From: Anthoceros angustus
Taxonomy: Eukaryota; Plantae; Anthocerotophyta
Length of the DNA stretch: 64,000 nucleotides
NCBI GenBank assembly: GCA_010909165.1
Contig: MU008154.1
Span: 310,001-374,000 of the forward strand
Reading direction: 5' to 3'
A program made the position numbers and the translations under genes. The notes beneath the pieces were generated by a model that made no database searches, had not been told where the DNA came from, and saw only the letters and a list, made by a program, of their open reading frames with translations. Shown here piece by piece: positions 1 through 56,328 of the stretch; within the stretch, counting starts at the first letter, position 1; each line of letters starts with the position of its first letter.

Positions 1-1
1 C

Positions 2-3011: not shown

Positions 3012-3429
3012 CAGACGACGATGGCATGGGTCCTATGATGATCACGATCCTTGAAGAGTGCAAGCTTGTTTTGGAGGCTGGGCCTTGATTTTGGATGGAG
3101 CAAAGCTGGGTCTTGATGTTTGGAAGCTTTTTGGTCCATCTCGGTCTACGAAGGTGTTTTTTCAAGAGTTGCAGGTTGCAGAACAACCCCAGCGAGTTGG
3201 ATGGCTGGGATGGGCAGGACAACGACGTGTTCCAAGACTTGATGGGGTCTCCGGGACCAAACTCCAACAAGGTTCTAACGCAAAGTTTCAAAGGGACACA
3301 AATGAATAAAAAGAAACGCTGAAAGGCAGGGAGGGATAGGGATATTGCACAGTTCGGCCTTCGTAAAGGAAGGACAGAGTAAAGGTGAAAGCTGTGATGG
3401 TGGACTCAATCTACATTTGAACATGGACT

Positions 3430-4400
3430 GACGGTTGTACATGGTCCTTGCCCTTTCGACAATCAACGTATCCACGGATACCTTCTCGAACACACAAGCC
3501 TAATGATGCTGTGGCAACACGCTTATCAGATGGTTAGATTTTCAAGCAACTATCTCATGTTTCATCTGCTTGATACGAGCTAGCACGCTGCTCGCAACAT
3601 CTTTGTCGAGCACCAAACCTGCTTTCTCTGCCCAAGTTCACATGACATATTCCACACGAACTCAGGCCAGGGGTAAGGAAGATGACGAGGTACTGTCCGC
3701 ACATGATGGAACAACAGAACTTATCTTGTCAAAAATATTTCCTCGTCCAGAAAGTTAACTCACAACACAGCGCATGTTGTTGCTGCAACGTGAATCCCTC
3801 CTTTGTGTGCGAATGCACTAGGCAGTTCCTGCTGCAACTTCGGCTAGAGTGCCAGCTATCTCCGCTAGTTGTGGGAGTTCATTAGAAAATAGATGTTGCC
3901 CTATCAGCTGTAATGATGCTTTCCTGTTCTCCTGCTGCGTTCTTGCATATAGAGCCAGAGCTTCTTGGGCATTTCCATGGGCCAACATCTCCTTTCTGCA
4001 ATCTGCTCGCTGTTCATCCATCATGTCCACCAGGCCCTTGCCGATGTTCACATCATCCTCAAGTCCACTTTCTTGCATTTGGCGATGAACCTGCGCGCCC
4101 TCATTTAAATGCTCCGAGTTCGACACATGCTTTGAGGAGGCAAGCATATGTCACAGCATCTGCTACTGAGACACCCTGCATGCAGGGCCAGAGCTTCTGG
4201 ACCAAACCACCCATGGTCAACATTTCCAGCACTCATGCAAGTCCATGTCACAGCCGATGTACCGGACAACTATTGAATGATTTTTGAGCATCTTCTAAAC
4301 TCCCACATTTCACAAACATGTCCACGAGACAGGTACCAACAATCATGACCATGTCAAGACCTCTGGCTTGAGTCTGATCGTGAGCTCTGGACGCTTCATG
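3430..4400 (-). pseudogene. Degenerate PLS-class PPR gene fragment
   Basis: Across frameshifts and stops: GTCLVDMFVKCGSLEDAQK, VTWT..DHG..EALAL, ADAVTYACLLKAC..G....GAQVHRQMQESGLEDDVNIGKGLVDM. These are typical P/L/S motif pieces. Confidence 0.85.
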
Positions 4401-4489
4401 TTCGCAGTACAGGAGGTAGGTGCCCCAAGAACCCAACCTACTGGGGCACCTACTTCCTGGACGGCCAACATGACGCGTTGAAAGAGTCG

Positions 4490-4670
4490 AGGACGCGGGA
4501 GCTCCGCTTTCATAGACTATACTTGGGCGAGGACACATGCCAAGGGAGGACAGAACTTGCCAACGCTGCCACTGCAGGAGGTGGACGACGAGCACCATTT
4601 CCTGGGCATTTCTCCTGCCCAGCCATACGGCAGTGTCGACTACAGCATTGCGGACTTGCTCAAGAACCAC
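4490..4670 (+). mobile_element. Non-LTR retrotransposon (LINE) 3' relic: C-terminal zinc knuckle (L2/Crack/RTEX-like)
   Basis: Frameshifted translation gives ILGRGHMPREDRTCQRCH..QEVDDEHHFL..SCPA, the R..PRE.R.C..C...VEDE.HFL..CP motif found after LINE RT domains. Short 29-32-bp tandem units follow (4692-4805). Confidence 0.65.
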
Positions 4671-6805
4671 TTGAACACGGCCCCAAACCTCCTGCTGCTT
4701 TCAATCACCCCATCATAGGGCTGCTGCTTTCAATCACTCCATCATATGGCTTGCTCTCAGTGTCCAACAAGCATCATAGGGCTTGCTCTCAGTGTCCGAC
4801 AAGTCCCCCGTCAAATGCCTGCTCCCCTTGCTCCCTCAGGCCTCAACAGCAGCTACAAATAGTAGCCGGCTGCGCATCCACCCAAAGAGGTTGGCTACCC
4901 GGAGGCCAGCCCGGAAGTCAGGTGGGCGGCAGCACTTCTTGCCACCCACCAGAGCCCCTGGTCTAGGAAAAACAGCCACAAGAGGCCTCCGAGTTCATTG
5001 CAAGGCTGCCCTCGACACTTGGTCGGCAGAATAGTCTCCAAGTCAGTCCATGGGAGCTGTCTCTACAACACCTGTTTACTCCTCCATTTCTCTTGATCGG
5101 ATCCAGAACGCTGGTGTCTCCGCGTGTGTGAGTCTGAGTAAAGTGCAAAGCGCCAGGACATGCAGAGGCCGCTCCCATGTACTCCAAGTGTGGCAGCTTG
5201 GGAGCACGGATGCCAGATGACCTTGTCTTGCACCCTACAGCTGTGCGCCGTCATTTGGAAAAAACATTCAGCTCTAGAAGTAGTAATTGCAGCTACCGCT
5301 CTAACTAAAGCACTGAAGCTAAGGATTGTGTACCAATATGGAATCCCCATATGGGAAATAAGAACCCAGATCTCATCCTAGCTTTGGGCCGTGTCATCAC
5401 ATTCTTCGGTACGGATCAGAGACAAAATCTTTGGAAATATGTACATGCATGCGCCTATGGTGTACCAAATGCGCACCGTGCCGTGTTCTTGTTTTATGGA
5501 TGACATGTGCTCTCTTACGATATATATATCCCTAAGTTTTGTGCGTGCGTTTGCGGCGATTTTATTTTCGAATCTAACTTCAAAAAGCTTGTTCACACCA
5601 TGCCTATGTTGGTTTAGGGTTTTCACATAGGGAGCTATGTGTAAGTACTCGGTGCTCTTGGGCGTTTGCTCCATGGCTGCATTAAGTTCGGGTTCAGAAC
5701 TCCTAGACCACTTGCAACTCTAACAGCGGAGGGTTTCAGAGTTGCTAGGTCGTTTGGAGCTTTGGGTCGGAAGGTCGAGGAAGAAATGCTATATTGTTCA
5801 AAATACACAAAGCCTCGAAACTCCTCGGGGATGGAAGGTCGAGTTGCTAGACCTGTTCACTTGTCCGGCGGAAGAAGAGGAAATGCTACATTGTATGAAA
5901 AGCACAGAGCCTCAAAACTCCTCGAGGATGGAGCTGGACCACCCAAAGAGGGAGAGAGGGGAAACGTGGTTCGAGGAAGCCGTTAGAACGAGGACATGAC
6001 AGACCCGTGTGTTGCAGCAGAAGTCTATCCTTTCTCGGCATCTTCCAATAGATTTCACGTCTTACACCCACCAAGGAAAGTCCACCGCTGGGCAAAATGC
6101 TAGTCGCAGCATTTGGGTTTTGTCCTAGAGGACAATCCTAGTTGCAGCGTTTGGGTTTTGTCCTTGCATTGTGTTGTAGTTATTTTTGCGTTGTCATTAT
6201 GTCAGCGTGTTGACGTGTTTGCTGTTGCAAATGGTGGTGGCTATATATACTAAAGTGACATGTCTTGTCCTCCTTCGAGGGATAAGGCATACAAGGATTA
6301 TCTTGCAAAATGGAGGGTTACTAGTCGGAATGGGTGGCAGTAATGTTGTTATGGCAAAATCTGCAACGGTACCCTAGTGTGTGATGGTCCGTGATCTTGG
6401 TTATCTGTGTTTTTGTGGCCTACACAAGGCTCGATTGTTTGTTCATCAATATGAACATGCCTGACCCAATGAATACGTCATGTGATTCCCGACATTTCAA
6501 GTACCTAGGTGCCCACTATGGATGGTAGACCTCCCACAGAAGCTTGTCCAACCTAGAGCATGACCAAACAAGGTCAACGACGATTCAGCATTCCATGTGC
6601 ATTCCGTGCAAACCCTAACATAGTAAACCCTGATCCTAAGTACAAAAATATTCTTAGACAGTGTCGATTCGGTACACCTGGAAGTGCATTCCAGGAATCG
6701 ATTGACATTCACGCCACTCCCCTCAAGTGGTGACATCTGGACATGAGTTCATGTGAACTCCACAGTGAAGTGTCTTTCGGACAGATAAGTGCTTGGATGA
6801 GGTGT

Positions 6806-6960
6806 CTGTTATAAACATCATGCCCTCGTCTCCGCAATGTGCAAGGCCACTAGTTTTTACTTTGTTGTAAACATCATACCCTTGTTTCTGCAGTGTGCGG
6901 CGCCACTAAATGTTAATGTGTTGTAAACATCATGCCCTCGTCTCCGCAGTGTGCAAGGCC
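6806..6960. repeat. 56-bp minisatellite, ~2.8 copies
   Basis: taaacatcat(g/a)ccct... recurs at 6812, 6868 and 6924 (period 56). Confidence 0.9.
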
Positions 6961-6970
6961 TGATCTCGGC

Positions 6971-8400
6971 TCAAGGTAAGTTAACCTGTGGACCCAAAGC
7001 AGGACTTCTGATTTTGGAATTCATCCAAAACGCTCGCAGCTTCACCAGCCAATTTCCGTGAATTGTACCAACCTCCGATCTCATCCACGGTTGGCTCCCT
7101 CCCAAACATTCCTCGAACCTATCCGAAAACCACGCTGCCCCCCATGGCCAAAGCATGCGTAGGTATTGCTACCCGTATCCTTCACCCTCTTCATGGCAGC
7201 TACTTTTTGCTGGCTAGAGGCTACAACACCATCTATCTTCTCCTTCTCCTCTCTCAAAAACACCGCCCAGTACTCCAGTTTTATACTCTTCGGAACATAG
7301 CCAGGGTTTTTCTTCTTGCCCTCCAGAAACTTTCGGGCCTCCTTCCTCACATTGTTCCGCCAATGCTTCAGATTAGTGCCAAAAAACTGCATCACAATAG
7401 CTTCAAATGACCAAGGACTTGAAATAGTTTGCCTCATGCATTGTTCAACATGAACCACAGTGGCTTCAGTTTGATTCCAAAAAACACTAATGAGAGGATT
7501 GCAGAGCCACCGGATGGTGTAATGCACCCTATCCTTCAAAGGCAAAAAGCTGGGGGAGTCCAGGTAGATGAATCTTGCACATCAGCACCAGCATAGTGTA
7601 AGGAATGGTTAGTCCTGAATTGCCTAAAACCCAAACATGAACTATCCAGGCCTGAATGGCCTGGAAAATACAAAGCTTAGAGGGCTGAAAAATACAGGCT
7701 TGAATGGCCTGAAAACAAGGGTATCTGAAAATCCAGGCTTGAAAGGCACGATATCAGCCGAACGATAATCGAGGTAAGTCTCCTTGAAAGCAGAAAGCTC
7801 ACTACAGCAAAACTCACCTCCTGGATGGAGGTGTTTGGGGAGCACTGCGTGTTCCACATCGGTCTTCCTTTTCCGCTTAGGACCTCTTGGGCCTTTCTTA
7901 TCGATGACACGGCATTCTTCTGGTATACACGGTTCATAGTCCTCATTCACTGCAGCAGTAGGAAGATGTTCACAGTCATCAACACCATCTTGAATGGCAC
8001 CATCTGCAGCCCGCGCCGCATTCGGTACCACAAAAACAAAGGGGTTAGCACTAGGCGCATCCGGCTGCTGCTTCTCCCCAACATTTGCCTCAATATAATC
8101 ATATTCCTGTTCACAACGCTCCAAACGGGCAGTTGCAGGCTCATGATCTGCAAGGGCTTGAGGCAAGGGTGTCCGATTGGCCAGAGTGGGGATTGAGCTC
8201 ACATGATCATCATTGACCTGCAGGTTGGGCACATTCTTCACGTGCTGGACAAATGTAGTCCACACAGATGTCCTCTTCTGACTATCAGGCACACTCATGA
8301 AGTCATCAGGTTGCATCCCATTACCGTTAGAAACCTGCGTTGTAGCTGCCTGATCTCCCCCTTCAACCGCCAGAGCATCATGGTTAGCCGCCAAAGTCAC
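6971..8400 (-). mobile_element. Degenerate CACTA (En/Spm) TnpA-like (Transposase_24-like) coding relic
   Basis: ORF 7081-7545 has WRNNVRK...YW..F...S....RVK...FGHGG and, after a frameshift, FEECLGGSQP. This loosely resembles the W..F...S..N..R....H..G...E..GR.P pattern of Ptta/En/Spm TnpA. An upstream low-complexity ORF (7642-8400) and short subrepeats at 7645-7745 lie alongside. TIRs were not identified. Confidence 0.35.
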
Positions 8401-9237
8401 CTCGCCTTATCTCGACAGTTCTGCAGCATTTGTTGCGTACAGTCCATTTGACACCTTGTTGCTCACATCCGCCGCGCAAAACCCTAGGCCAGAACCTCCC
8501 AAACATCGTCCGTAACGACCGATTACTCACAAGGACGGGGCGGACGATGCAAGCCGAGGCGGGCGAGGTAAGAGCTTGCGGGATGGTCTGGGGATGGCGG
8601 GCGGCAATCGCAGGGCAGCAATCTCAGTGCCCTGAGGCCGACGCCAGTGCCGCTAGCGTTAGGGCATTAGAGGCCATCGAGTGTGAGGACTCTGACGAGG
8701 ATCCGGAGGCCCGCTTCTACAAGGAGCAATGCAGAACTTATTTGGATGGATTATCAGATGACGAGGATGTGAAGAGGATGTGCCTCACGGCTCCCGCAAC
8801 AATAGCCGTGAGTTCCTCGGGATCAGAAGGTGTGGATAGGCGACCAATCTTTGAGGAGAAGGTCCTGTGTGCGGATAAGGAATCCGGCGAGGGTCGGCCG
8901 ATGTCATCCGATAGCGAAATCGACGAGGAAGGGCGTCGGCGTGTGAAGGTGAAGGTCAACGCCATGGCCCGTGCTCCAGTTGTGCACCCTTCTCCTCCTC
9001 AGGCCTTGTAGAGGCGTCTGCCTTCTGTGCCTGTGTCTGGGACTTCCTCACCCGCGTCCACTTATCTCTAAGGGCTTGAGCGCCTGGCCCCAAAATCGAC
9101 GTGGCCACCTCCATATTCTTGTTCTTCACAGACAGCGTTGGGTGTGAAGCAATTCTTCCTAGCACGGCAGCATCGACTGCTGCATCTCCCGCGCACAAAG
9201 CCGCCGTTGCCAAGCGCCTGGTCTCCATATCCTTCTC

Positions 9238-10357
9238 GGCATGGAGCTCCACCTTCTGAGATTTTGGCATCTACATAACCTCCCATTGCTGGCTGTGAAA
9301 AACAAGAGCATGCAGAGGACGACACGCAAATAGCCGCAAACTGTTGTTGCTACCCAATGCCTGAAAAAAACGGACTTACCCTTACGATACAATTATCTCT
9401 CACCACGCTGTCTGAGGTGTGTTTCCTGCAGATTGGACTTCCGGTGGATTGCTAAGTGAGATGACAAGCGCGGTTACTACGAGACGAAGGGTTTTCTATA
9501 CACTTGAATAGCGTCTCTCCCTTGACCGCGGTGTGCAACATCGCCGGGAAATGACTCATAGTCAGGATAAGATATCTTAGTGTTCAAACAAGTACGAACA
9601 CCTCTTGTCACCAAAGTGCGGAGCCGTTCATGAAGTCCCGAAGTTGTAAGGCCGCCTAGGGATGATATGAGCAGACGACAAAGGGCAAGGTGCAAGTCCA
9701 CCAACGCCGAGTGTCTACTTGCGTGAAGGTCTTGTAAAGGCATCATAGTCCTCATGTGAGAAGGGTCTCGATGCGGTAAGGTGTTGAGGATCTTCTGTGG
9801 CATGGAGCTCCACCTTCCGAGATTTTGGCATCTACATAACCTCCATTCTGGCTGTGAAAAACAAGAGCATGCAGAGGACGACATAAATAGCCATGTTGTT
9901 GCTACCCAATGCAAAAACGGACTTACCCGATACAATTATCTCTCACCACTTCGAGGTGTGTTTCCTGCTGATTGGACTTCCAGTGGATTGCTAAGTGAGA
10001 TGACAAGCGCGGTTACTACGAGACGAAGGGTTTTCTATACACTTGAATAGCGTCTCTCCCTTGACCGCGGTGTGCAACATCGCCGGGAAATGACTCATAG
10101 TCAGGATAAGATATCTTAGTGTTCAAACAAGTACAGTAACACCTCTTCCGTCACCAAAGTGCGGAGCCGTTCATGAAGTCCCCGCTGAAGTTGTAAGGCC
10201 GCCCTAGGGATGATATGAACAGGACGACAAAGGGCAAGGAATTGCAAGTCCACCAACGCCGGCCGAGTGTCTACCTGTTGCGTGAAGGTCTTGTAAAAGG
10301 CATCATAGTCCTCATGTGAGAAGGGTCTCTGATGCAGTAAGGTGTTGAGGATCTTCT
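9238..10357. repeat. Tandem duplication of a ~560-bp unit (2 copies)
   Basis: ggcatggagctccacctt... occurs at 9238 and 9799. The segment 9510-9797 recurs at 10050-10357 with several small indels. Confidence 0.92.
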
Positions 10358-11174
10358 GCTGGCAGCTGGAGTGGTGGAATTCTTCGCCTGCAATGATTGC
10401 AAAGAATGCCCACCAGCCGTTGGAACGATGTAACCAATTGGGTTTGGGGTCCAATCCACTAGTTGTTAGTGCGCTGTGGGGTTACTCTAGACCCTAAACC
10501 TACTAGCCAGATCTGCCAGTTCTTAGTGCTTTGCGGGGTTACTCTAGACCCCGGACCTATGGGCCAAATCCCCGGTTGTTGGTGCCCCCACGAGGTTACT
10601 CCAAATTAAAATCTGAGTATATATTTTAAAAAATATATATATAATCTTCAAATTCACTAAACATATGTACCACTCGACGAGAACGTATGTTGAAAGATTT
10701 TCTAAAGCCCGCATTAGACACACTATGTTTCTGAAGTGCATATTCGGTACACCATAATATATGTATCCGAAAGTGCGCATTAGGTACACCATAATATATC
10801 GTTCCGAAGTGCGCATACATAGTATATCACGTCGGAACGGGCAAAGTGTTGCAACAGGAGAAAACGTCGGAAATCGAACGACCGGAACTGCAATTCTCGT
10901 GGCCACGGCGCCCTTTGAGGGATACAAACGGTTGATGGCGGTGTGGGCCATGACGGCGCACTAAGAAGACGTCTCACTGGTCCAAGTCACGTTTTTTCAA
11001 TGGCTTGGTTGAGACTGGCCCATCGTAGTCGTTGGAAAACTTGAATCACGGGACTGTGGAATACTTTAACGCAATATATACGTCACAGCTCTGGGCATCT
11101 CATGCATACCGACGCAAGCCTCGAATCCTCGGTGCCGCTGTCCTGCCTGATTGAGCACTCCGGAGGTGCCGAGG

Positions 11175-12814
11175 ATGGTGAAATTACCAGAGGCCAGATG
11201 GCTGTTGCTAGCAGTCTGCATCATCTTCCTGGTCTCTGGATGGGGGCTGAGGATTCTGCCTGCCAGAAGCATCCGGGGCTCCTCCTGTGTAAGTTTGGTC
11301 GAATTGGACCACGCGAAGGAGCTGGAGAGAAAAAAAGGGGGTGATCATGAGCAGGTTTGTGATGGCAAGAGGATTTTTATGCACAAGCTGCCTGCTGCGT
11401 TCAACGAGCTACTGCTAGCGAATTGCACCGCCACCGAGCTGCTTCAGTCAGAGCTGTGCAGGAATCTGATGAACTATGGATTCGGGCCTGAATTCGAGTT
11501 CAAAGCGGCGGGGGATCCTCTGAGGGACCTGATTATTCCACAGGGAGCCTGGTTTCAGACGGATCAATTCAGTCTGGAACTTATCTTTCACTCCAGGCTG
11601 AAGCAATACCGGTGCTTGATAGAGGATCCGGAGCTGGCAGACCTGTTTTTTGTGCCTTACTATCCCGGGATGGATGTCATGAGGTACATCTTCACTCCCA
11701 AAGTGCAGATGCGGGATCGTGTTATGCAGCGGCTGGTTGGGTGGTTGGAGGCCAACCCTTACTGGAGGCGGCGGCAGGTGTGGTGGAACTGTCATTTGCC
11801 TGGTCCTTTGGCCCTGTACATAGTTGTTTTGTTTGAATTTGGGGGCAGCAATTCAGTGTGGTGTTTCTCTAGGGCCGGGACCACTTTCTGCTGCTCGGCA
11901 GAATCGCGTGGGACTTCGAGAGGCCAGAGGAAGCTGAAGATCGATGGGGCGGCAGCATGCTGAGTATTCCCGAGTTGAGGAATCCTACCAAGCTGCTGCT
12001 GGAGAGAGATGTGTGGAGGGAAGATCAGGTACCGATGGCATGCTTGTTTTTCTTGCTACCTGGATTTCTGTGAGCTGCTTCCTGTACCAACGGCGTGTAT
12101 ATGTTTTAGGTGGCGATTCCTTATCCAACAGCCTTCCATCCGAGGTCGATGAAAGATGTCAGGCAGTGGCAAGCTGTGGTTGAAAACTCGTCCCGGCCAT
12201 ACAGAGTGTCTTTTGTGGGCGGCTCCAGAGGGTCTGACTCACAGCCAATTCATATCCGGACCGCGGTGCTGGGGCAATGCGAGGAATCTGCGAACTGTAC
12301 ACTGTTCCTCTGCCGTAGGGACGTGGATTGTAGCCCACAATCGCACCAGGAATTGATAGCACGAATCTACCTCAAGTCTGTGTTCTGCTTGCAACCGCCG
12401 GGAGACTCACCCACCAGGAAGGCCATCTTTGACTCCATGATTGCAGGATGCATACCCGTGTTCGTTAACCCACAATCCGCGTACAAGCAGTACATTTGGC
12501 ACCTGCCTGATGGGGATGAATATTCGGTCCTTTACACTGAGGGGGACATCCTGGGACCGCCGGGGTTCAATATATTAGAGGCCATAGCAGCCATCCCTGA
12601 GGAGAAGGTCAAGAGAATGCAAAAGAACATCTTGCGTCTGATGCCTCAGCTGGTGTATGCAAATGGACTGGTAGGAGTAGGAGCAGCTGGAGTACAAGGT
12701 CCGACCATAGCAGAGAGTAAAGAGGGGCCAAGTGGCACATCTGTAGACTTCAAAGATGCCTTTGATATCATTCTTGAAAGATTACTGCAAAGGGTACGGG
12801 CACAAGATTCCTAG
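11175..12814 (+). CDS. GT47 (exostosin) xyloglucan galactosyltransferase-like, MUR3/XLT2 group; 3 exons (11175-11777, 11873-12028, 12110-12814)
   Basis: N-terminal TM anchor, then TDQFSLELIFHSRL, LFFVPYYPG, GRDHFLLLGRIAWDF, AIPYPTAFHP, FCLQPPGDSPTRKAIFDSMIAGCIPVF and AYKQYIWHLP. Both introns are GT-AG and phase-consistent. Confidence 0.93.
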
Positions 12815-13234
12815 CTGGGTGCTGCGGATGGAATGGTACTTAGCAAAGGGAAGACAATGCAGCCAGCATAAGAGGCTGCAGAAGCAGAGGAAGGTAGAGG
12901 TCCAGCTACCCATCATACCAAAAAATCCGTAACAAGAAGAGCTCAGGTGTGGACTCTGCGCTGAAGCTAAATTTCTGTACAGTAGCAAAATTGCAGAGAA
13001 GTCTGCAATCTTTCCAGACTTCTCTCAAAACTGAAGTGGATGGACCCAGCGAGGACGATGCCCACCCTGCTTGCAAGACAATTATTCTCCTTGCTTCACA
13101 CGGGGTGGCAACAAGGTGGAGGTGCCTGCAAGCAGGCACACCAGCAGAGTCACGTATTAGAAGATGGCAGAACTTTGGAAAGCCGAATGAACAATCTCAA
13201 CAGGCGAAGACTGCTAGCAACAAACCTGTGGCTT

Positions 13235-14015
13235 TCACAATGTAGGGGCAAAATCGCGGAGTAAAGCGGCCATCTCGATAGCAGTGATGGCCGCTTCAGC
13301 TCCTTTGTTTCCTGCCTTTCCCCCAGCTCTGTCAATGGCCTGCTCCATATTGTCGCAGGTGAGGACGCCGAAAATGCATGGAACCCCCGTGCTCAGGCCT
13401 GCGTTCATGATCCCAGAGGCCGCAGAGTTTGCAACTGCATCGTAGTGCGAGGTGGCTCCCCTGATCACAGCTCCGATGCACAGGACAGCCTGGTACTTCC
13501 CAGACCGGGCCACAGCCTGAGCCACAACGGGGATCTCGAAGCTCCCTGGCACCCACACCACCACCACATCCTCCTCGCTAACCCCGTACCTGGCGAACGT
13601 CTCCAGCGCCCCTGCTAGCAGCGGCTTGGTGATGATCTCGTTGAAACGCGCTGCAACGATGGCAAACCGGAGCCCAGCTCCGCGCAAGACGGACCCGGTA
13701 ACCTCCGTCACCGCCGTGGCTTGCAAGCTCCAGCCGGCCCTTTCTCCGTTCCGCCCAGAGCTCACACGCTGCCAGGACGCGCATTGCATCAAGCCCGCAA
13801 TAAGCATCGAGATGCAACATGGGTGAAACCGGTTTGTCCCCCCACACTACCTTCGGTTTGGAGCTGCCCAAAGGCACGTTGGCAGCGCGCACTGAAGCAA
13901 TCCGACCCACATTGCCAGGGCTGCGCAGCGTCTGTGGCTGGGGCTGGCCTTGTCTCTCCTTCAGCACCTGGCGTGAGGGCAGGAAGGCGGAAGCGAGTCT
14001 GGACACGGCCGCCAT
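13235..14015 (-). CDS. ribH: 6,7-dimethyl-8-ribityllumazine synthase, plastid-targeted; 2 exons (14015-13851, 13768-13235)
   Basis: [36 protein letters not shown] and [13 protein letters not shown] are present. Transit-peptide exon [12 protein letters not shown]... joins in frame through an 82-nt GT-AG intron. Confidence 0.96.
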
Positions 14016-14635
14016 CGCCGCTCTGCTGCAGCTGCGGGATTATGTCTTTCTCTGCTGCTGCCTAGAGTATCTATTAAACCTCAAAACTAGGGGTTTTCCG
14101 GATCCGCAATCGTGCCGATATGGCGCCCCAGGACCCGAGCTGCCAGGCGGAGCGTTGGGTCGTGGGCGGCATGGTCAAGTTGGGTTGTGGGCACCGGGCT
14201 GTGCAAGAGTAGGCAGGGATTATGGGGAAGAAGAAATGTAATTGGGACAGCGTCGAGGAAGGAGAGCTTGTGTGGAAGAGGAGGAGGAAGGGTGAGCTGG
14301 AATGGCCCAGTAATGGTTTCCAGCCGTGTGCAGAATCTGGGCTGCCCACAGCAAGATAAAGTGGTTGGGGCAGTTTGCTGAGAAGGGTGCATAGCAAAGC
14401 ATAATTCAAAGCTCACGAGGAGGATCCAAGCCGGATCTTCCTGCTCTTCTGGATCTCTTTCAGGTGGAATCAGCTTCCGTTCTGGTTTGCCGGGGCTGCG
14501 TTGATAAGGTAAGGAAGGCTTTGATAGGATGGAAGTGAGACAGATTCTGACATGCTTGTTGTTGTTTCTTTTCAGCCAGAGACGTTGCGAGAATTTTGAG
14601 TAGTAGCCGGCCTGGTACCGCTATGGTTCCCAGCC

Positions 14636-18400: not shown

Positions 18401-18829
18401 CAAATGGCTTAGGCCAAATGGACACATTTATAAGAACGCTGTGATTAAGCATCCTGAGCTTAGATCGGTACTTAAATGGGGTGCCTAAAGGGAGTGGATG
18501 TTCTTGGTGCAAGTAGCTTAGGTACACCATGGCCAAATGGACACACATTTATAAGAACACCGTGATTAAGCATCCTGAGCTCGGTACTTAGATGGGGTGC
18601 CTAAAGGGAGTGGATGCTCTTGGTGTACTTAGATGGGGTGCCTAAAGGGAGTGGATGCTCTTGGTGTACTTAGATGGGGTGCCTAAAGGGAATGGATGCT
18701 CTTGGTGCAAGTAGCTTAGGCATACCATGGTACAAGTTGTTCAGTACCAAGTCCCATGTCGAAAATTCGTCCTTTGTATGAAGAAGGGTCGTCCTTCGTA
18801 CGAATTAAATAAAATTCTTTTACTTCTTC
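18401..18829 (+). mobile_element. Dispersed SINE-like/non-autonomous repeat copy with internal duplications and a TTC-rich tail
   Basis: Shares gtgattaagcatcctgagcttagatcggtacttagatggggtgcctaaaggg...gtaccaagtcccatg...ttaaataaaattc with three copies at 52.2-53.0 kb. An internal ~41-bp subunit is repeated three times. Confidence 0.7.
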
Positions 18830-25710: not shown

Positions 25711-27568
25711 AAGTGTGGGTCAGCACGGCCTGAGCCGACAAGCCCATGGATATCCCGAGTTCTCACAGGGTTGGGGGTACGACGTCCCACTGCCTCCCGA
25801 CAGAGGCGGTAGGTAGCTAACAGCAGTCAGTCTCTCATTTTTGAATCCTAGCCTCTACATCCAAACAATCCTAGACTTTGTATCATACCTGAAGAGAGCA
25901 GCAGTTGAGAGTAGGTCGTAAAATCGGTGTGTAGGCACAAACTTGTACTCTTTGCAACAGTCATTTTACTCACATGGTTCCGTCAAAAGTCTGTACAGTA
26001 TTTCGACTCTCCTCTGTACTACGTCTGTGCATGGCCCCTACATCCTGCATGTGCGGACGCAAATCCCACCAAGCACCTTGCAACATGCTCAGCCAGGATT
26101 TTTCCACAGGCAACTCACAAAACATGCTTTCGAAAATCTGCAAGCAGAAAGGAGGAGGGGGAATTCTTCCTTCGCAGTCTATGGTGTCAAGAAGACGAGT
26201 GAATCCTCGACTGTCTGGGCGCCGAAGACGAGGAAGAAGAAGAAGACGAGGCCAGCATGTTGGCCAGAAATGCTACACACACGAGCACAAAGGCCACAAA
26301 ACCCAGCAGAGAAGCCGCCAAAGCCACCGACATCGCTGCCATGGACAAATCCAGACAAAGCTGGACGAGGTCCCGAACAGTAAACATGACAGCGGAGGAT
26401 CACCCACAACCCCCAGTCCCGAACCACAGCTGCATCAGATCCCAGCACCACAATTCGATGAGCTCGCAGGCCCTGCGGAAAGAAGCAGAGGCATGACAGC
26501 GCCCTCGAGGTGAAGCAGGCAGAAGGAGATCCAAGAGACTTGCCTCTGCGTTGCTTGAGCTGGGCACTACGGTAAGCATGTGGTGCTGCTGCAGCAAGCC
26601 GAACAAGTGCTGGACCTGAAACAGGATTCCCGAGTCCCGACCGTCGGGACTCGATGCTAAGAAGGGGAGCAGCAAGCAACAGCAGGACACCTGTGCACCT
26701 AAAACCTAACACCCCCTGTAACTGCTGCTACGCGCTAACCATCACGGTTGCTGCATCAGCTGACGACTCCACCGCCAGGACCAGGATTCGCCGATTGACT
26801 CCTGACTGCAAGGTTGGAACCTGTGGTGCTGCCCTCTGATCCCACGGCCTTGTAAGGAGTAGACACATGCACAACCGACCCATTAAACCTCTCGTCTGAA
26901 CTGCGTTCCATTTCCGCACTCTCCTGCTGCCTATGTATATAAGCGCAGCAGAGCCAGCAGGCCTTGTGCGTGCGTGCTGGCGTGCGTATCTACTACAAGC
27001 ACATGCGTGTGTGTTGTGTGGGACGGGAGCACACGGAAATATGTTCAAGGACGTGGAACAGACGCAGCCACCGTTGTCTCCATGCTTCTTGGCTTCCCTA
27101 TATGAAGGGCAGGGCTGGGTGCGGTGATGCACAGCTTGCAGGGTGCTTGTGGGTAACTCCCACCTGAAGTTGTGCTGTATGCAGAGGGGAATCGCATCTG
27201 AGATGTGGAGGTAAACCCTACAAGGCCCAAGAGCGCGCACGGGAGAGAGGCTAGGCTGGGCTGGGCTGGAGCGGAATTTGAATCTTGGGAGTGGGAGAGA
27301 GCTGTGGCGGATTCGTCTAGGTCGCAAGAAATGAGAATGGGTTGTTGGTGACGAGGAGGGGAAGCAGGAGTTCCCGATTGATTAGCCGCCGAGCCGCTTG
27401 TTGCCTTTCGTGGGTGGAACAGGGAATCGGTGGTTGCTTCTGCGATGATTTGCAGGGCGGGATGTGATGGATATTTTTTGTGAGAGGGTGATGTGATTGC
27501 GGAGTGGAGGAATCGGACAGGGCAGAGCAGAGCAGACCAGACCAGACCAGACCAGACCAGCTTCAGGG

Positions 27569-29188
27569 ATGTGGCATGAGGCTCGCAGGTCGGAGAAGCG
27601 GGTCCATGAGCTCATGGATGCCGCCAAGAGGCGGGCAGAGAGGCGAGCCGTCTTTCTGTCCAGACGGCGGGGGGACCCGCAGCAGTCGCTGCGGATTGTG
27701 GGGAGCAGATGCAGGTTGCACCACGACTCCGCCTTCTACCACTCCACGCAGGACGAGCACGGGCTGATTCCCTGGAACGGGAAGGAGGACAACCTGATCG
27801 ACAGGTTCGATGGGCGGGCTCTGCTGGACTACATCTCGGAGTACAATTTGCACCATGCGCAGCGGGAGAAGACGGAGGAGGAGGAGGAGCTGGAGGAGCT
27901 GGTGAATTTCGAGAGGTACAGGGATCTCATCAAGCAAAGGAGGCAGGGGCTGACGGACGAGGAGGGGCTGGAGGAGGTGGACACGGAGTTGGAGTCCAAG
28001 TCCAGGGCTTTGCTCACCGACAAGCATGGCTCGGCTCCGGGGAAGGGGGCTGCCCACAACACTGCGCAGTTCAGCTATGCCTACGAGAACGAGCCTGCCG
28101 AGGACCCGGATCTGCTGCTGGACAGCGGGGATGAGGACGAGGAGGACGGGGAGGAGATCACCAGCAGCGAGGACAGCGAGGATGAGGAGATGGAGAACAT
28201 CGCCAAGGTGTACGGGGTGGACAGCTTCGCCAGGCTGGTGCATCTGGAGAGGAAGACCAAGGAGGAGGAGAGGAAGCAGAAGGAGGCTGCCAAGTGTGAT
28301 CTGAGCATGAAGAAGCTGAGCAGGAAGGAGAGGAGGAAGTTTGCCCAGCAGGAGAGGGAGAAGGAGAAGGAGGCTGCCAGGCTCAAGAGCACAGGGACTG
28401 CCTTTGATCCGTACAGGGAGCAGAGGGGGAGTCCGACCTACGAGAGCTACCATCGCTCCAGGAGGGAGAGGAGGAGAGGAGGGGTGGTGGGTGTGGCCAT
28501 GGGAGGCGGAGGCGGAGGTGGAGGTGGGACTGTTGAGAGCAAGGGGGATGGGGGTGGGAAGGGAAGTAGTGGGAAGGGAGAAGGGGGAGCAGCCTCGTCT
28601 ACAGGACCAGCCCAGATAGAGTACATCACGGAGTTCGAGATTGCAGATGCAGATGCTGGGAGCTCTGGGGGAGGGCCGCCCCCGCCTGTGTACTCCCCGT
28701 ATCGGGAGCCTCTGAATCGGCACCAAGGGAACCAGATCCTGGAAGCTGTGCGGAGTGATCCTGCTGCTGTGCTTGACAACAACAACGTCATCTTGCCTGC
28801 CGCGCTGTATGCAGCCTGGGATGACAAGGCTGTGGGTGCCAATGCGTCTGCTCTTGCCAAGCTGCAGAAAACCCCTGCAGCTGTGCGGGCACCTGTTAGG
28901 AAGCCCGAGGCGGAGAAGAAGGAAACTCCGCAGGAACGGCTCAAGAGGATCATGTCCAAGCAGTTGAACAAGCAGATTAAGAAGGATACCATCACTGGGA
29001 TGGCCAAGCGGCGGGAACAGGAGAAGCAGAGGCAGGAGAAGCTTGCAGAAACAAGGAGCCTTGCGAGGCGTTGGAGCAGGAGTAGGAGCCGAAGCCGGAG
29101 CCTCTCTCCATCTTGGTCTTCCAGGCGGGAAGCTCACACTTACAGACGGCATTCGAGATCACCGCCGCCTCATAGACACCATAGATAG
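27569..29188 (+). CDS. CLASRP: CLK4-associating Ser/Arg-rich splicing protein (DRY_EERY/SWAP-like domain), intronless
   Basis: MWHEARRSEKRVHELMDAAKRRAERRA, LIPWNG..DNLIDRFDGRALLD, EELVNFERYRDLIK, IEYITEF, ETPQERLKRIMSKQLNKQIKKD and an RS tail. Confidence 0.93.
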   Translation: MWHEARRSEKRVHELMDAAKRRAERRAVFLSRRRGDPQQSLRIVGSRCRLHHDSAFYHSTQDEHGLIPWNGKEDNLIDRFDGRALLDYISEYNLHHAQREKTEEEEELEELVNFERYRDLIKQRRQGLTDEEGLEEVDTELESKSRALLTDKHGSAPGKGAAHNTAQFSYAYENEPAEDPDLLLDSGDEDEEDGEEITSSEDSEDEEMENIAKVYGVDSFARLVHLERKTKEEERKQKEAAKCDLSMKKLSRKERRKFAQQEREKEKEAARLKSTGTAFDPYREQRGSPTYESYHRSRRERRRGGVVGVAMGGGGGGGGGTVESKGDGGGKGSSGKGEGGAASSTGPAQIEYITEFEIADADAGSSGGGPPPPVYSPYREPLNRHQGNQILEAVRSDPAAVLDNNNVILPAALYAAWDDKAVGANASALAKLQKTPAAVRAPVRKPEAEKKETPQERLKRIMSKQLNKQIKKDTITGMAKRREQEKQRQEKLAETRSLARRWSRSRSRSRSLSPSWSSRREAHTYRRHSRSPPPHRHHR

Positions 29189-36856: not shown

Positions 36857-38059
36857 TCATACAAAGTATTTTTTCACCAAATATGCATAAAGCTCTTTAT
36901 CTAATTTATTGTAATTGAAAACTTCTTCTTTGACTTCGTAGGATAAGTTTTCTTTGTACTCAGTAAAATTGAAAAACAAAGAAGAATCTTCCGACATTTT
37001 AAATTTCTTACTAACAAGAGAATTCTGCCTACAAGTTATTTCACATTTAGCATAATCATTCATAATTGTTGTCACAGCCAATCTTGCATGTTCAGGATTT
37101 GGTATCTCTAAAAGGTATTGGTTCAATAATCTTGCAAGCTTGCGTGCAGAGTCATAGTGTTGCTCAAAAAGTCCAAAAAAGAACATATCATCTACGATTT
37201 TTTTTGCAACATCAAGAACAACTTGACCAGCAGCTGGATAATTTGTGGCACATATACGCAACGTCTTTGCATTAGCATTTATAGAATTATTTGTAAGTCC
37301 AACCACTTGAAAAGTTTGTCCATTGTGCACCAAGTCTGCAACTATGGGGTGATGAATGAATTCTTCGTAAGGCATGACAAAATAATCCAAGGTATCGTAT
37401 GTTAAAAACTCACTTCCATTAGAAGTCATGGTTCCACGTGCATGATTGATCTTATCACTTCTTACCAAAGGAATAAGATAATTCCACGGCCATACATCAA
37501 AAGCACTAGTGAAGGTATGTTGCGTTTCATTAGTTACATACCACTTCGATTGAGATGAGATTTTATCATCTTTCGACAATGCGGCTACGTATATGTTGAA
37601 GACACGTTCCAAAGGTTGATGAAATATAGACATTACTGAGGTGCTTTCCTTCCCAAGCTTTGATACCAAGCTATAGTCGTCATGGCTTATCAGTAATCGG
37701 CAATTTGGTACTTCACCCTTAGTTCGCAGATCAATATATGAATTGCTGCATTTCTCTTCTGCCGTGAATAACTTATGTAATAGGCACTGGTTTAAAGTTG
37801 TAGCACTTGTACCTGGAATATCTAGAAAAAAAAGTAATTGTTTGAGTTGATCAAATTTGTGAATATGATCAATATTAAAGCTTTTCTTCTTGATCTCGTG
37901 CGCCCATATTCCAAGTTCCTTCATACAAGTTTCATATTGGTTATCATGTGAAATATTATCTATGTCTTGGAATGGATTCCGAATCCATATAATACTTGTG
38001 GATATCACAAAACCACATGTCAAAAAAAGAAGCAAAGTCTTAATACTAATCCTCGTCAT
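36857..38059 (-). CDS. TPST: Divergent tyrosylprotein sulfotransferase (plant TPST)-like protein, intronless, 400 aa
   Basis: Collinear with plant TPST: LLFFL.IP.T, CRLLISHDDYSL.SKL.KE.TSVM, DVWPW.YL.P, HNGQTFQV.GLTNNS, VAKK.VD.M.F.GL.E, N.LD.ELY. Has an N-terminal TM anchor and no C-terminal TM. Confidence 0.85.
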   Translation of the reverse strand: MTRISIKTLLLFLTCGFVISTSIIWIRNPFQDIDNISHDNQYETCMKELGIWAHEIKKKSFNIDHIHKFDQLKQLLFFLDIPGTSATTLNQCLLHKLFTAEEKCSNSYIDLRTKGEVPNCRLLISHDDYSLVSKLGKESTSVMSIFHQPLERVFNIYVAALSKDDKISSQSKWYVTNETQHTFTSAFDVWPWNYLIPLVRSDKINHARGTMTSNGSEFLTYDTLDYFVMPYEEFIHHPIVADLVHNGQTFQVVGLTNNSINANAKTLRICATNYPAAGQVVLDVAKKIVDDMFFFGLFEQHYDSARKLARLLNQYLLEIPNPEHARLAVTTIMNDYAKCEITCRQNSLVSKKFKMSEDSSLFFNFTEYKENLSYEVKEEVFNYNKLDKELYAYLVKKYFV

Positions 38060-51286: not shown

Positions 51287-52226
51287 GCAATCGACACGCA
51301 CTGGATCACCAGCACGCACAGGGCATTTGCGCTACAGTCTATGTAACTCGGGATTGGCTCAATGCGAACCCGCCCTGAAGAAACCTTGTAACTTGGGACT
51401 GAAGAAACCTAACACAAGACGCTGGAAACTGAACAAGAGCGTACTGTTAGGTGTACACAGAGATTCTACCTGCAGCTTCCGCTCACCTCACTTTAGGAAG
51501 TCAGCCCCTGGCAGACATAGCCTCCAGGTGCAGCAGAGGACGGTGCCCAGCACTTCCACTTTCGAGAAAATGTGTGGGTGGGGACGGGATCGTCAGAGAA
51601 GGTCGTCCCAGGAGCAGGAGTACTTGTGGCAACAATTTTTTCTGGATCATACCATGTGGTGGGACAACAGACGAGACAAGTAGAGCTCCCGTTCGCCTGA
51701 CTTCCGGTGTAAGGTGTAAGGGGTCCGGCGAGCTGCTGTGGTTAAACAACATGTTCAAGCCAGGCTGGGTTGATGGGCAGCTCGTTGCCTTGGATATGCA
51801 GATGGGTCATGGTACCTCTCCTTCCAAGTCGAGATCTCTGGATAAGCCTGAACCTGGCAGGCGTGCAGGATGGGAAATGGGCGTCGTACGGCTAGAACCG
51901 TGAGCATGTTATGAACCGTGAGCAGGGAAATCTGCCTGAGGCTGTTGGAGCCCTGGAGTCTCTGGGCGCAGGCAGACTCTACCATTTCTGGGTCTTTGTT
52001 TCGCACTCTGCTGAAGCTGTGGTCGGCTAAGAAGGATTTAGTCGGGGGGCGATAACTCCATGATCTCACTGTCAAACTTGGGTACGAGTCGATTGCATAC
52101 TTGGGGAACCATATCTTGCGCAGGTATGGATGTGGAGGTAAGGCCACGCAATCTGCTAGAGCTCACTCCGTCTTCACACAGGCTAGGCCTACAAGGAGGA
52201 TCTCACAGCTAGGCCTCTAAACAGAC

Positions 52227-52996
52227 GAAGAAGAATTTTATTGAAGTTCACTAAGGACGGATTTCCGTCATGGGACTTGGTACTTAACAACTACTTCTAC
52301 CATGGTATGCCTAAGCTACTTGCACCCAGGGCATCCATTCCCTTTAGGCACCCCATCTAAGTATCGATCCAAGCGCAAGATGCTTAATAATGACATTTAT
52401 AAACCATAGCCTTTTGGAAACAGCCCATAGCCCTCCGTCTAATGTGTCTAAATGGCTAAAAATGTCGTGATTAAGCATCCTGAGCTTAGATCGATACTTA
52501 GATGGGGTGCTTAAAGGGAGTGGATGCCCTTGGCGCAAGTAGCTTAGGCACACCATGGTACAAGTTGTTAAGTACCAAGTCCCATGATGGAAATCCATCC
52601 TTAGTGGACTTAAATAAAATTCTTCTTCTTCTTCTACTGCTCTTTGCCCTCCGTCTATTTCATAGAAACTATAAACGCCTACCACACGTACCAAATGAGA
52701 TGGCTTTGGCCAAAGACACACATTTATAAAAACGTCCTCCCTCTATTTCACAGAAACTATAAACGCCTACCACATGTACCAAATGAGATGGCTTTGGCCA
52801 AAGACACACATTTATAAGAACATCGTGATTGAGCATCCTGCGCTTAGATCGGTACTTAGATGGGGTGCCTAAAGGGAATGGATGCCCTTGGTGCAAGTAG
52901 CTTAGGTACACTATGGTACAAGTTGTTAAGTAACAAATCCTATGACGGAAATATGTCCTTAATGGACTTAAATAAAATTCTTCTTCTTCTTCTTCT
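52227..52996. mobile_element. Cluster of three SINE-like repeat copies: one inverted (52227-52398) and two forward (52460-52634, ~52735-52996), with an extra 5' part at 52646-52734
   Basis: Same family as 18401-18829. The forward copies end ttaaataaaattc(ttc)n. Copies 1 and 2 form an inverted repeat. Confidence 0.75.
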
Positions 52997-53304
52997 ATAA
53001 TCACATAGGCTTGACCATCTATACTATTTTGTGGCACTTAGTTTCTTGGCTATAGCACTTCAAACTCTACACAAAGCCCTTACACTACGGTAGTTCTTCA
53101 ATAAAGAATGAAGAAAAAATAATGCTTCCATAAAAAGTGGTAGAAAAAGTAGTTCTTCAATAAAGCGTGGTAGAAAAAAAGTTCTTCAAACAAAGTGGTA
53201 GAAAAGGGTTTATACATTGGACGCGTGATCTGCCTTGGTAACATGAGCTAACCTTGTTGAATTCTAGCTCCTCGTAACATTACCTAACCTTGTAGAATTC
53301 TAGT

Positions 53305-54358
53305 TCAAAGTAGAGCTTCTAGAGGACCTAAATAACCTTGTTGAATTCTAGCTCGAAGTAGAGCTTCTAGAGGACCTAAATCAAGACTTAAGGAAGGCGC
53401 TACTTCCTCCGGCACATTTTTGCCAAATATGTCATTACTTGTAATGTAAAGAGGGATTGAGAATGACCCATCCAACAGCTCAATTTGAGCAACATCGGTG
53501 ATTGTTAAATCTTCCCGTCTTTTGAAGAATACGGCTATATCAAACGTTGCATTAGGAGTGTATCTTGTACTTGCTCTTTTTTTCTTTTCGATGTTGATCC
53601 CTATGGCTATGCGAGCCAAGGTATCAGCTTCAACCCATTCGCTAATTTCTCTCCGGAGCTCTTCTTTGGACTCATTTTGATAAGTCACTTCAAAGACCAC
53701 AGTATGACAACTTTCAAGAGGAGTGTCTCCTGGTCCCAAAGAGAAATCAGGTTCTTTATGCCTTCTCATGAGCTTCACCCCATGAGAGAACATGACATCC
53801 ACGTAATTCATGACTCCCAAGGCTCCCATTTTCTTCAAGAGAGCAACCATCACCCTTTCTACATAATCAATGGTAAGTTCATGTACCTCCGACAAATCAC
53901 CATATAACCAAATAAATCCATTTTCACCATCACCATCTTCAGGTAATTTACTAGGCTCCCAAGCAAACTTCCATAGTGTATCTTGACTACGTCGCCACTG
54001 TTTAAAATGGGTCTTCCATACCTTATCACTCACAAGATATGGCCCTTTCTGCCAAGACAAATCCCTATGTAAGATCTGTTTATGCTCATGGACCGCACGT
54101 CTCACACCATTATCTAGATTTTCTGCACATATCAAATCTATTTTATAAATATTTAATACATTAAAAAAATCTACACTACTGATCACGATTCGTGTTAGGT
54201 TAAAAGAATACACCATGGACACAAAACAAAGAACAAGATGAAAACAACCTATCGGCCTCGGTGTAGTCTAGCTTGGCATGAAAACATGCACAATTGCTCG
54301 TAAGTGCAAATGATCTCAACATAGCTAAACTCATTCGCGAAACCTGCCTCGGCTGCAT
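53305..54358 (-). CDS. Uma2-like / PD-(D/E)XK restriction-endonuclease-fold protein; ORF 53305-54222, with a predicted 5' exon at 54358-54249
   Basis: Intact 305-codon ORF with SEVHE, KEPDFSLGP, TVVFEVTYQNES.EEL...EW and RIAIGINI, in the order of Uma2/CR-REase motifs. Optional 70-nt intron 54179-54248 (GT..CTAAC..CAG) is phase-consistent. Confidence 0.7.
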
Positions 54359-54596
54359 CTGACTTGGTGCGGTTCAGCAGCCAATTAATCAAAGACTCTG
54401 GAATGTCGGATTAGAAGCTAAGCACTGATGTAAAAGACCTTGGAGAAACTATCAGGACTGGAATTGGTGGTCGTGTGTATGGAGAGCATGAAGTAACCAC
54501 ATGAGGGCCAGTATTTGAGAAAAATGGAAGAGCTCCAATCACAAGCTTCTCTTGCTGGGGACGTTGGTTTGTGCCGAGTTTAACTATCTACATATG

Positions 54597-54776
54597 ACTC
54601 CATTTCGCATCAGTCGTGTCTCTCCATAAATTACAGTTAAACGAAATCGGATTGTTTCTACGACTCCATTCTGCATAAGTCACGTGACTCTCCATACATT
54701 ACAGTTAACGAAATCGGATTGCTATCTGTGACTCCATTCTTCAGTCACGTGACTCTCCATAAATTACGATTAACGA
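54597..54776. promoter_or_regulatory. Three ~66-bp tandem units, two carrying a palindromic G-box (GTCACGTGAC), in the divergent intergenic region
   Basis: gactccatt at 54597, 54662 and 54730; GTCACGTGAC at 54679-54688 and 54744-54753. Regulatory function is inferred. Confidence 0.55.
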
Positions 54777-55158
54777 ATTGGGCAAGTAGCATCGAACTGG
54801 CCCTTCGCCCTTTGCCCTTTGCCTAGCATGAAGGACTTGACTATTCTATGCGGTGCAGCGGAGATGCGTTCTAGTAGCGGCTTGTCAATGTCGGATGAGG
54901 GAGACAGAAGGAACGCTCATTGATCACTGAGCTCCCAGAGACACAAACTGCCAGGTCTCTGTCCAGTTGTGACGGTAGGTGGCACACTGTGAAGTAGGTC
55001 TCACCTGCTGCTCGGCCTGCTTGACTATGACATACAAGCTTGTCTGTTCCAACTTCGAAGCACTTCGGAGCCTCAGGATAGATCTCTGAACCGTATACAT
55101 GTTTCGATCTGGGTCAGGAACAGAGCCTATCTTGCAGGTAGAGCGGGGGACAAGAGAG

Positions 55159-56328
55159 ATGGCAGACACGGAAGGTTCCCGGAAGGTGGCTCTCGTTGTA
55201 GGAGCCACAGGCATTGTCGGGAGAGCTATGGTTGAGCTGCTGGTGAATCCCGGCTGTTCTAGTTACGCCTGGAAGGTGTATGCTGTCGCAAGACGACCCC
55301 AGCCCTGCTGGTTGAAGCGAATTTCCCCAGGAGGTCCGAAGTCCGGAAGCCTAGGCTCGGAATCCAACAGCGGCTTCCAGTACGTGCAGTGCGATCTGTT
55401 GGATCGTGAGGACACTCTGGCCAAACTCTCCCCCCTGAAAGATGTCACGCATCTGTTCTGGATGACCTGGGTGAAAGCTGGTTTAACGGAAGAGGAGAAC
55501 GTGGAGGCCAACAGCAGAATGTATCAGAACGCCTTGGATGCCGTAGTCAGGGAAGACGGGCCTCTGGAGCACATTGCAGTGACAACGGGCGGGAAATACT
55601 ACCTCGGCTCCTTCAGCGATACAGGCAAGATTATCGTGCCTGACCTTCCTTTCAGGGAAGACGCACCTCGCAGACCGGGTCCGAATTTCTACCACAATCT
55701 CATGGACAAGACTCTGGAGGCAGTGAAAAGTAGTAACGGCAAGGTAACATGGTCTGAGCATCGACCCACGGGCGTCTGGGGTTTCGCTCCTCGAAACCAG
55801 ATGAACGTTGTGGGAACCGTAGCCACGTACGCGCTTATCTGCAAGGAGGAAAACTTGCCGTTTGTCTTCCCCGGGAGCCGGGTGTGCTGGGAAGGACTGT
55901 CTGATTGCTCTGACGCCGGCTTGATTGCTGAGCAGCAGCTGTGGGCGGCCACCAGCCCGGCGGGGAAGAACCAGAGCTTCAACATCACCAACGGTGACGT
56001 GGTTACCTGGAAGGGGATATGGCATGCAGTCGCTGAGAGGTTTGGATTGGATGTCCCTGAGTACAGGGAGGCAGGCCCCAGTATGGTGGAGCTGATGAAG
56101 TGCAAAGATAGCACCTGGGATGCTATTGTGGAGAAGCATGGATTGGAGAAAACCAAGGTTGATGAAGTTGGACATTGGTGGTTCATGGACATCTTCGTAA
56201 ACGTGCCTTTCGAGATTGTCCTCAGCATGAACAAGAGTCGGAAGCTGGGTTTTCTGGGCTGGAGAGATAGCTTGGATAGCCTGCGTGCCACATTGGATGA
56301 GATGAAAAGGTACAACGTCATCCCCTAG
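55159..56328 (+). CDS. VEP1: PRISE (progesterone 5-beta-reductase/iridoid synthase-like SDR, VEP1 family), intronless
   Basis: ALVVGATGIVG, VYAVARR, TGGKYY (catalytic Lys), NFYH (catalytic Tyr), WSEHRP, SDAGLIAEQQLWA, FNITNGDV and SMNKSRKLGF. Confidence 0.95.
   Translation: MADTEGSRKVALVVGATGIVGRAMVELLVNPGCSSYAWKVYAVARRPQPCWLKRISPGGPKSGSLGSESNSGFQYVQCDLLDREDTLAKLSPLKDVTHLFWMTWVKAGLTEEENVEANSRMYQNALDAVVREDGPLEHIAVTTGGKYYLGSFSDTGKIIVPDLPFREDAPRRPGPNFYHNLMDKTLEAVKSSNGKVTWSEHRPTGVWGFAPRNQMNVVGTVATYALICKEENLPFVFPGSRVCWEGLSDCSDAGLIAEQQLWAATSPAGKNQSFNITNGDVVTWKGIWHAVAERFGLDVPEYREAGPSMVELMKCKDSTWDAIVEKHGLEKTKVDEVGHWWFMDIFVNVPFEIVLSMNKSRKLGFLGWRDSLDSLRATLDEMKRYNVIP

Follow-up and report, generated by a model that had tools for sequence, protein, structure and literature searches.

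Genes and features of the locus

We describe an intact, single-exon gene of 305 codons plus stop, at positions 53305-54222 on the minus strand of the window, by which we mean the whole 64-kb stretch of DNA that was analysed, together with the genes and repeats that surround it. The open reading frame (ORF) is the sole one in a 3.2-kb block between two host genes. Elsewhere the window carries a PPR protein of 895 aa, exons of a GT47 exostosin and of a GH16 protein of the xyloglucan-transglycosylase type, a DRY_EERY splicing regulator and a cation-efflux protein, while a class II aminoacyl-tRNA synthetase with a WHEP domain lies directly downstream of the ORF. Scans of the window with Rfam and for tRNA genes gave no matches. 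Head-to-head with the ORF stands a single-exon PRISE reductase (55099-56328, plus strand), which is a gene of the progesterone-5-beta-reductase/iridoid-synthase-like kind. The best match of this reductase among 5.8 billion clusters reaches 58% identity, its best named matches come from Sphagnum (51%), Marchantia (47%) and Adiantum (46%), and no copy of its exact sequence is on record; similarities of this kind suggest that the source plant is probably seed-free. The original prediction, made from the letters of the DNA, had taken the gene to be embedded in a plant genome, and the PPR, GT47, GH16, PRISE and class II aminoacyl-tRNA synthetase genes found in the same window bear this out.

The frame of the ORF remains open upstream as far as an in-frame stop at 54268-54270, a total of 320 codons. 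By comparison, when the 3.2-kb intergenic block was shuffled 2000 times the longest open run reached 227 codons, with a mean of 106, and in 200 random 64-kb sequences with the composition of the ORF the maximum was 250 codons. Because the 320-codon frame exceeds both of these maxima, the ORF is not a chance feature, and the stop-free, intact frame of 305 codons that had been predicted is confirmed.

The most likely start codon is the ATG at 54214-54216, which gives a protein of 303 aa and is the simplest choice, rather than one fixed by homology. In the family alignment, several relatives carry a leucine, not a methionine, at the position matching ORF residue 38, and these begin anywhere from a few to 40 residues further upstream; an N-terminal extension of the window protein is therefore normal. 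The N-terminal 35 residues of the ORF are encoded by AT-rich DNA and are unlike any relative. A 52-codon ORF further upstream (54200-54358, minus strand) had been proposed as a 5' exon, and this proposal is not supported: the small ORF has no family match in the Pfam scan and no counterpart among the relatives, and a search upstream of the main ORF for the N-terminal extensions of the longer relatives returned nothing similar. When the sequence is read by eye, a GT...AG interval of some 70 nt could join 54200-54358 to the main frame; the join is predicted by no tool and is common to no relative, the two pieces were searched separately, and the 5' exon is a mechanical possibility only. The exact window protein is absent from a collection of 15 billion proteins, so that there is no sign of its prior annotation or expression.

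Composition and repeats around the gene

The ORF has a GC content of 0.40 and a GC3 of 0.33, as against 0.55 and 0.66 for the adjacent PRISE gene. The bona fide host genes of the window range in GC3 from 0.30, in a GH16 exon, to 0.74, so that the ORF, though AT-rich relative to its PRISE neighbour as was originally noted, is no compositional outlier. These observations bear on the idea that the ORF belongs to contaminating or misassembled foreign DNA, which could be entertained on the ground that its relatives include microbes and a virus-like contig (described below). We regard this as extremely improbable, since the ORF is contiguous with plant genes that lie within 1-2 kb on each side of it in one stretch, its composition falls within the host range, and its nearest relatives come from loci that are likewise plant-like rather than microbial.

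Several repeats lie close to the gene. A 48-nt tandem repeat (53285-53381, no strand), present in two copies with a partial third at 53249-53296, spans the last codons and the stop; the last coding segment has been duplicated by it, with the consequence that the ORF ends within the second copy, about nine residues beyond the ends of its relatives. A repeat scan gave a 30-nt tandem repeat at 53091-53205. On the other side of the gene, a 68-nt unit is repeated 2.8 times at 54596-54777 (no strand), with two CACGTG cores, at 54681 and 54746. It sits in the 876 bp that separate the ORF, on the minus strand, from the PRISE gene, on the plus strand, and we suggest that it is a possible promoter or shared regulatory element of the two. 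Downstream of the ORF, at 52223-52996, there is a nested inverted and direct repeat with units of about 180 nt that match at 85-93%, another copy of which is found 34 kb away, at 18404-18777; it looks like a short non-autonomous dispersed repeat outside the gene. The earlier description of the gene as flanked by repeats is accurate in so far as tandem and dispersed repeats lie nearby, but none of them form matching ends that bracket the ORF.

Relatives of the protein

The ORF alone has no match in Pfam, even at E<=10, in NCBIfam or among the PDB sequences, nor did a word-indexed protein search return one. An exhaustive phmmer search of 1.84 billion representatives did reveal 25 relatives at E<=1e-3, of which seven also pass E<=1e-10; the strongest match has an E of 5.9e-22 and 42% identity. 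The named relatives are all uncharacterised proteins. Selaginella moellendorffii has three divergent lineages of the gene family, two of which have near-identical twins that are possibly haplotypes, and the ferns Adiantum capillus-veneris and A. nelumboides carry relatives, with one to two loci visible per fern; numbers of this order do not fit the expanded family that had been envisaged. Beyond these plants, a tandem pair is found in the oomycete Pythium brassicae, a partial match in the green alga Trebouxia and a weak match, the weakest named member of the family, in the fungus Helicocarpus griseus, which we take to belong to the Onygenales. Among the named matches (25 matches from 1.84 billion representatives) there are no angiosperm, gymnosperm, moss or liverwort proteins, and the suggestion that such genes fall outside the standard angiosperm repertoire is upheld as far as the angiosperms are concerned. 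The family is small, unnamed and eukaryotic and is, among plants, confined to seed-free lineages. Its proteins, of 240-340 aa, are stand-alone and single-domain.

The closest relative comes from the assembly of a sequencing run, on a contig of 7.7 kb (L001), where ORF residues 12-296 align with 37% identity over 289 residues. This copy (4623-5486 of the contig) contains one in-frame stop and no frameshift, and may be a pseudogene or reflect an assembly error. It and the window ORF have subfamily-specific insertions and deletions in common. A metagenome scan with a closer subset of the family (A4) yielded two eukaryote-like contigs. The neighbour-joining tree is star-like and carries no support values, for which reason no direction of transfer is drawn from it. 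Membership of a bacterial defence or phage family was also considered and was rejected, PADLOC and PHROGs scans of all 30 members having given nothing meaningful.

Predicted fold

An AlphaFold model of ORF residues 33-305, made with an alignment of 30 relatives (A3), has a mean pLDDT of 78.7 and a pTM of 0.75; prediction from the single sequence was useless (pLDDT 31.9). The confidently modelled part comprises residues 33-294 (53341-54126, minus strand). In this model an N-terminal helix and a beta-rich lead-in are followed by a nuclease core of alpha-beta-beta-beta-alpha-beta layout and by a C-terminal beta/helix extension.

Compared with the PDB by Foldseek, the model had six matches at E<=1e-3. 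The first nine rows of the result are all chains of 6okh, 9y1l, 1wdj, 3ot2 and 3ijm, with probabilities of 0.99-1.00 and target TM values of 0.48-0.60; for the first four of these, all of them Uma2/DUF820 structures, E runs from 1e-4 to 6e-3, with probability 1.00 and target TM 0.57-0.60. From rank 10 onwards the probability is <=0.2 and the matches are noise. Of these entries 1wdj is identified as TT1808, 9y1l as a 'putative restriction endonuclease domain-containing protein', 3ot2 as a 'putative nuclease belonging to DUF820' and 3ijm as a 'restriction endonuclease-like fold superfamily protein', and a survey of the PD-(D/E)xK enzymes gives 1wdj and 3ot2 as the structures of PF05685 (PMC3424549). 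Uma2/DUF820 (PF05685) thereby provides the best, and essentially the only significant, structural matches to the model of the window protein, at a sequence identity of 10-17% in the structural alignments. The Uma2-type restriction endonuclease fold of the original prediction, which had named AlphaFold and Foldseek as the means of checking it, is in this way borne out at the level of the model.

The link is far fainter at the level of sequence. A single relative of the 30, P0023, matches the Pfam Uma2 model (E 4.2e-4, profile positions 20-119 of 172), and its score of 20.3 bits lies below the gathering score of 27, a score that is reached by no member of the family, the window protein included. 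The family profile has no match among the PDB sequences, against which P0023 gave only chance matches to Cry proteins (E 0.6-1), and a tblastn search of plasmids with P0023, in pursuit of bacterial Uma2, returned a single chance match. The modelled structure supports the view that the window protein is akin to the bacterial Uma2/DUF820 (TT1808) proteins, though very strongly diverged from them, and has the restriction-endonuclease-like fold of the PD-(D/E)xK superfamily.

The two groups can be compared further. The window family resembles Uma2 in that its proteins stand alone and, as far as the model shows, in where its conserved acidic residues lie: on helix 1, ahead of strand 2 and on strand 3. 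It differs in its hosts, Uma2 being listed as bacterial only (PMC3424549) and the window family being eukaryotic, and in its length, which is 240-340 residues as against some 150-190 for Uma2 proteins; relative to these, the window family adds the N-terminal helix and the C-terminal beta/helix extension. The Helicocarpus griseus member has no Pfam Uma2 match, unlike the protein F2SXP0 of the onygenalean Trichophyton rubrum, which carries a Pfam-recognised Uma2 domain (PMC4102429).

Conserved residues and the putative active site

Alignment and model together define three motifs, in the order in which they had originally been read from the sequence: residues 107-115, YGD....HE (53878-53904); residues 156-159, KEPD (53746-53757); and residues 178-184, EVTYQNE (53671-53691), all encoded on the minus strand. 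The conserved columns of the alignment, in ORF numbering, are W84 (26/26), Y107 (24/28), G108 (23/28), D109 (24/28) and H114 (26/28), followed by K156 (24/28), E157 (23/28), P158 (23/28) and D159 (25/28), by E178 (28/29), Y181 (26/29), N183 (26/29) and E184 (27/29), and finally by L189 (27/28), E192 (24/28), W196 (28/28) and G208 (26/28). At residue 115 the column holds E in 20 and D in 4 of 28 sequences, with A, G or S in the four others. At each of the 18 best-conserved columns the residue of the window copy is that of the majority.

The model places H114 and E115 at the start of the first core helix, D159 directly ahead of the second core strand and E178 on the third. DSSP assigns, in the trimmed numbering of the model (ORF numbering minus 32), helices at 80-100 and 154-164 and strands at 109-112, 128-132, 143-149 and 173-181, and in this numbering E115 is residue 83, D159 residue 127 and E178 residue 146. 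The modelled core has, therefore, the layout of the PD-(D/E)xK fold, with an acidic residue on helix 1, an aspartate at the start of strand 2 and a glutamate on strand 3; these are the canonical catalytic places of the fold (PMC3424549). The canonical lysine, two residues after E178, is absent from all 29 sequences, the column at position 180 holding A in 22, S in three, G in two and T and V in one each. We suggest that the near-invariant K156 may stand in for it. The retention of catalytic acidic residues, as it was first proposed, holds for the acidic residues at the canonical sites and does not extend to the lysine, which is missing throughout the family.

From this arrangement we would expect the protein, of about 303 aa, to bind a divalent metal through the conserved acidic residues E115, D159 and E178 and, with the metal bound, to cut nucleic acid as a stand-alone enzyme. 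The bacterial Uma2 proteins appear in the literature consulted only as predicted or putative endonucleases, with no biochemical characterisation found, so that nuclease activity is doubly inferred for the window protein. It is conceivable that the fold is retained in a catalytically inactive protein, which only binds nucleic acid or another protein: the canonical lysine is wanting in 29/29 sequences, four relatives have A, G or S in place of E115, and long N- and C-terminal additions flank the core. Yet D159, E178, E184 and K156 are kept in 86-97% of the members, as one would expect of an active site, and we consider inactivity improbable.

A more serious challenge to the idea of a working enzyme, and the main rival to it, is that the gene is a decaying relic, no longer used, whose frame is open merely because too little time has passed for it to close. 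Such a gene might well be found in no protein collection, as is the window protein, and might have a closest relative with an in-frame stop, as L001 has; the rewriting of the 3' end of the ORF by the tandem duplication, the AT-rich N-terminal 35 residues without likeness to any relative and the loss of the family from most land-plant lineages are also in keeping with decay. On the other hand, a frame of 320 codons in DNA of 40% GC is far beyond chance and the majority residues at the 18 most conserved columns are complete, while the possession of common indels with L001, at an identity of only 37%, argues for long-term constraint within this branch. Decay of this kind is, in our judgement, unlikely, although less so than loss of activity in a retained protein. 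Our preferred reading, which we hold to be probable, is that the gene encodes a stand-alone, metal-dependent nuclease of a Uma2-like branch of the PD-(D/E)xK superfamily and is a resident nuclear gene of the host, of old foreign origin.

Genomic context of the relatives

There is no synteny between the window and ten related loci, which have nothing in common with it but the ORF itself, and no partner gene is conserved between loci. What had been put forward as a candidate for an undescribed system is a single gene and not a new system; it is real and mildly unusual. One Selaginella copy, made up of a single exon, stands between MIF and SMC genes, and another Selaginella copy and an Adiantum copy have spliced gene models. 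The Pythium pair stands among ribosomal, eIF and VPS35L genes. The two Pythium brassicae gene models (L005), of 321 aa each, occupy 5730-6973 and 8001-8966 on the same strand, about 1 kb apart, and the second is a weak match to the family profile.

These contexts are informative about the suggested kinship with Crinkler-type effectors and with mobile elements. Restriction-endonuclease-fold domains are common C-termini of Crinklers, and Crinkler-like proteins have been reported in land plants (PMC5289972). The window family belongs to the same broad fold superfamily as the Crinkler or CR-toxin domains and shares some host groups with them, its oomycete and fungal members and its patchy distribution being features that would suit an effector domain, or else a selfish mobile nuclease such as a homing endonuclease or the cargo of a transposon; so too would the repeats near the ORF. 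Against this, scans with Pfam-A at E<=10 matched no member of the family to a Crinkler model or to that of another effector-type domain, and detected neither the Crinkler header nor its modular architecture. The proteins are short and stand alone, and the Pythium members, together with a Selaginella gene, lie among housekeeping genes. The ORF is not flanked by inverted repeats, occurs only once in the 64 kb and has no neighbouring transposase; the dispersed repeat lies on its 3' side only, and synteny or a shared partner gene between the loci is lacking. Neither the Crinkler-type kinship nor the mobile element is supported on this evidence, and a gene of either kind seems to us very improbable indeed, more so than an inactive Uma2-fold protein.

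Virus-like contigs and the origin of the gene

One relative, P0004 (E 7.4e-14 to the ORF), is encoded on a metagenome contig (L006; ENA ERZ22827514 NODE_529, 1-14339) that is 93% coding and carries genes for TFIIB, TFIIS, a C962R-type archaeo-eukaryotic primase, a thioredoxin and DUF5755. The contig has the look of a giant virus and is, by its appearance, of the Nucleocytoviricota. No relative was found among the BFVD viral protein structures with Foldseek, nor in IMG/VR when this was scanned with the closest family subset (A4). A further family member, P0028, lies beside RtcB and DUF7487 genes on a contig of GC 0.30 (L012; Logan SRR29837426, 1-6196).

The patchy distribution makes a horizontal origin of the gene, as was originally suggested, plausible and no more than that. 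In each genome the gene has the composition of its host. Because of this host composition, and because two of the relatives have spliced models, any transfer would be old. For the nuclease reading that we prefer, the distribution suggests that the family would have entered eukaryotes by an old horizontal transfer and may have moved between lineages, possibly by way of giant viruses. The window gene would now be a resident host gene, rather than an effector, a mobile element that is still active or a component of a system of several genes, and repair, recombination and defence or conflict are candidate roles for it.

A Selaginella family typified by EFJ10148, found in this seed-free plant, a few fungi and one giant virus, has been described by Maumus et al. 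in 2014 (PMC4083422), in their account of giant-virus-like gene families in Selaginella and Physcomitrella. The window family resembles this family of unknown function in its distribution, and EFJ10148 itself is not among the Selaginella accessions found for the window family. An insertion of the type described by Maumus et al. is a cluster of giant-virus-like ORFs, whereas the window gene is solitary. An endogenous giant-virus insertion was rejected as an account of the window locus, there being no cluster of virus-like ORFs and only one ORF in the 3.2-kb block.

A bolder reading may be sketched, in which the nuclease is borne by giant viruses and has been taken up time and again by eukaryotes whose swimming gametes or zoospores meet aquatic viruses, namely lycophytes, ferns, the source plant, green algae and oomycetes, and has been kept by them as a host gene for antiviral defence or genome conflict. 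We consider this chain of events to be improbable, and offer it as speculation. If it were true, the family would be a plant-side counterpart of the bacterial nuclease defences, drawn from a fold so far recorded as bacterial only.

No function has yet been demonstrated for Uma2/DUF820, one of the large families of predicted nucleases, and the survey of the PD-(D/E)xK enzymes lists it as bacterial (PMC3424549). The present locus points to a small eukaryotic branch of the Uma2 fold that is undetected by current family models and unnamed in any source. Such a family gives a second way into the function of the Uma2 fold, this time from the eukaryotic side, and a compact case in which to test for old exchanges of genes among viruses, microbes and early-diverging plants.

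Other reading frames in the window

Two further features of the window may be recorded. At 36857-38059 on the minus strand there is an AT-rich ORF of 400 codons (GC 0.345) with a hydrophobic N-terminal segment, without a match in Pfam or among the PDB sequences; it looks like another gene that has gone unannotated. Where the GC content is 0.59-0.60, two long ORFs overlap on opposite strands, 27497-29188 (plus, 563 codons) and 27563-29152 (minus, 529 codons); the plus-strand ORF is the DRY_EERY splicing regulator, and the antisense ORF is probably a by-product of the high GC content.
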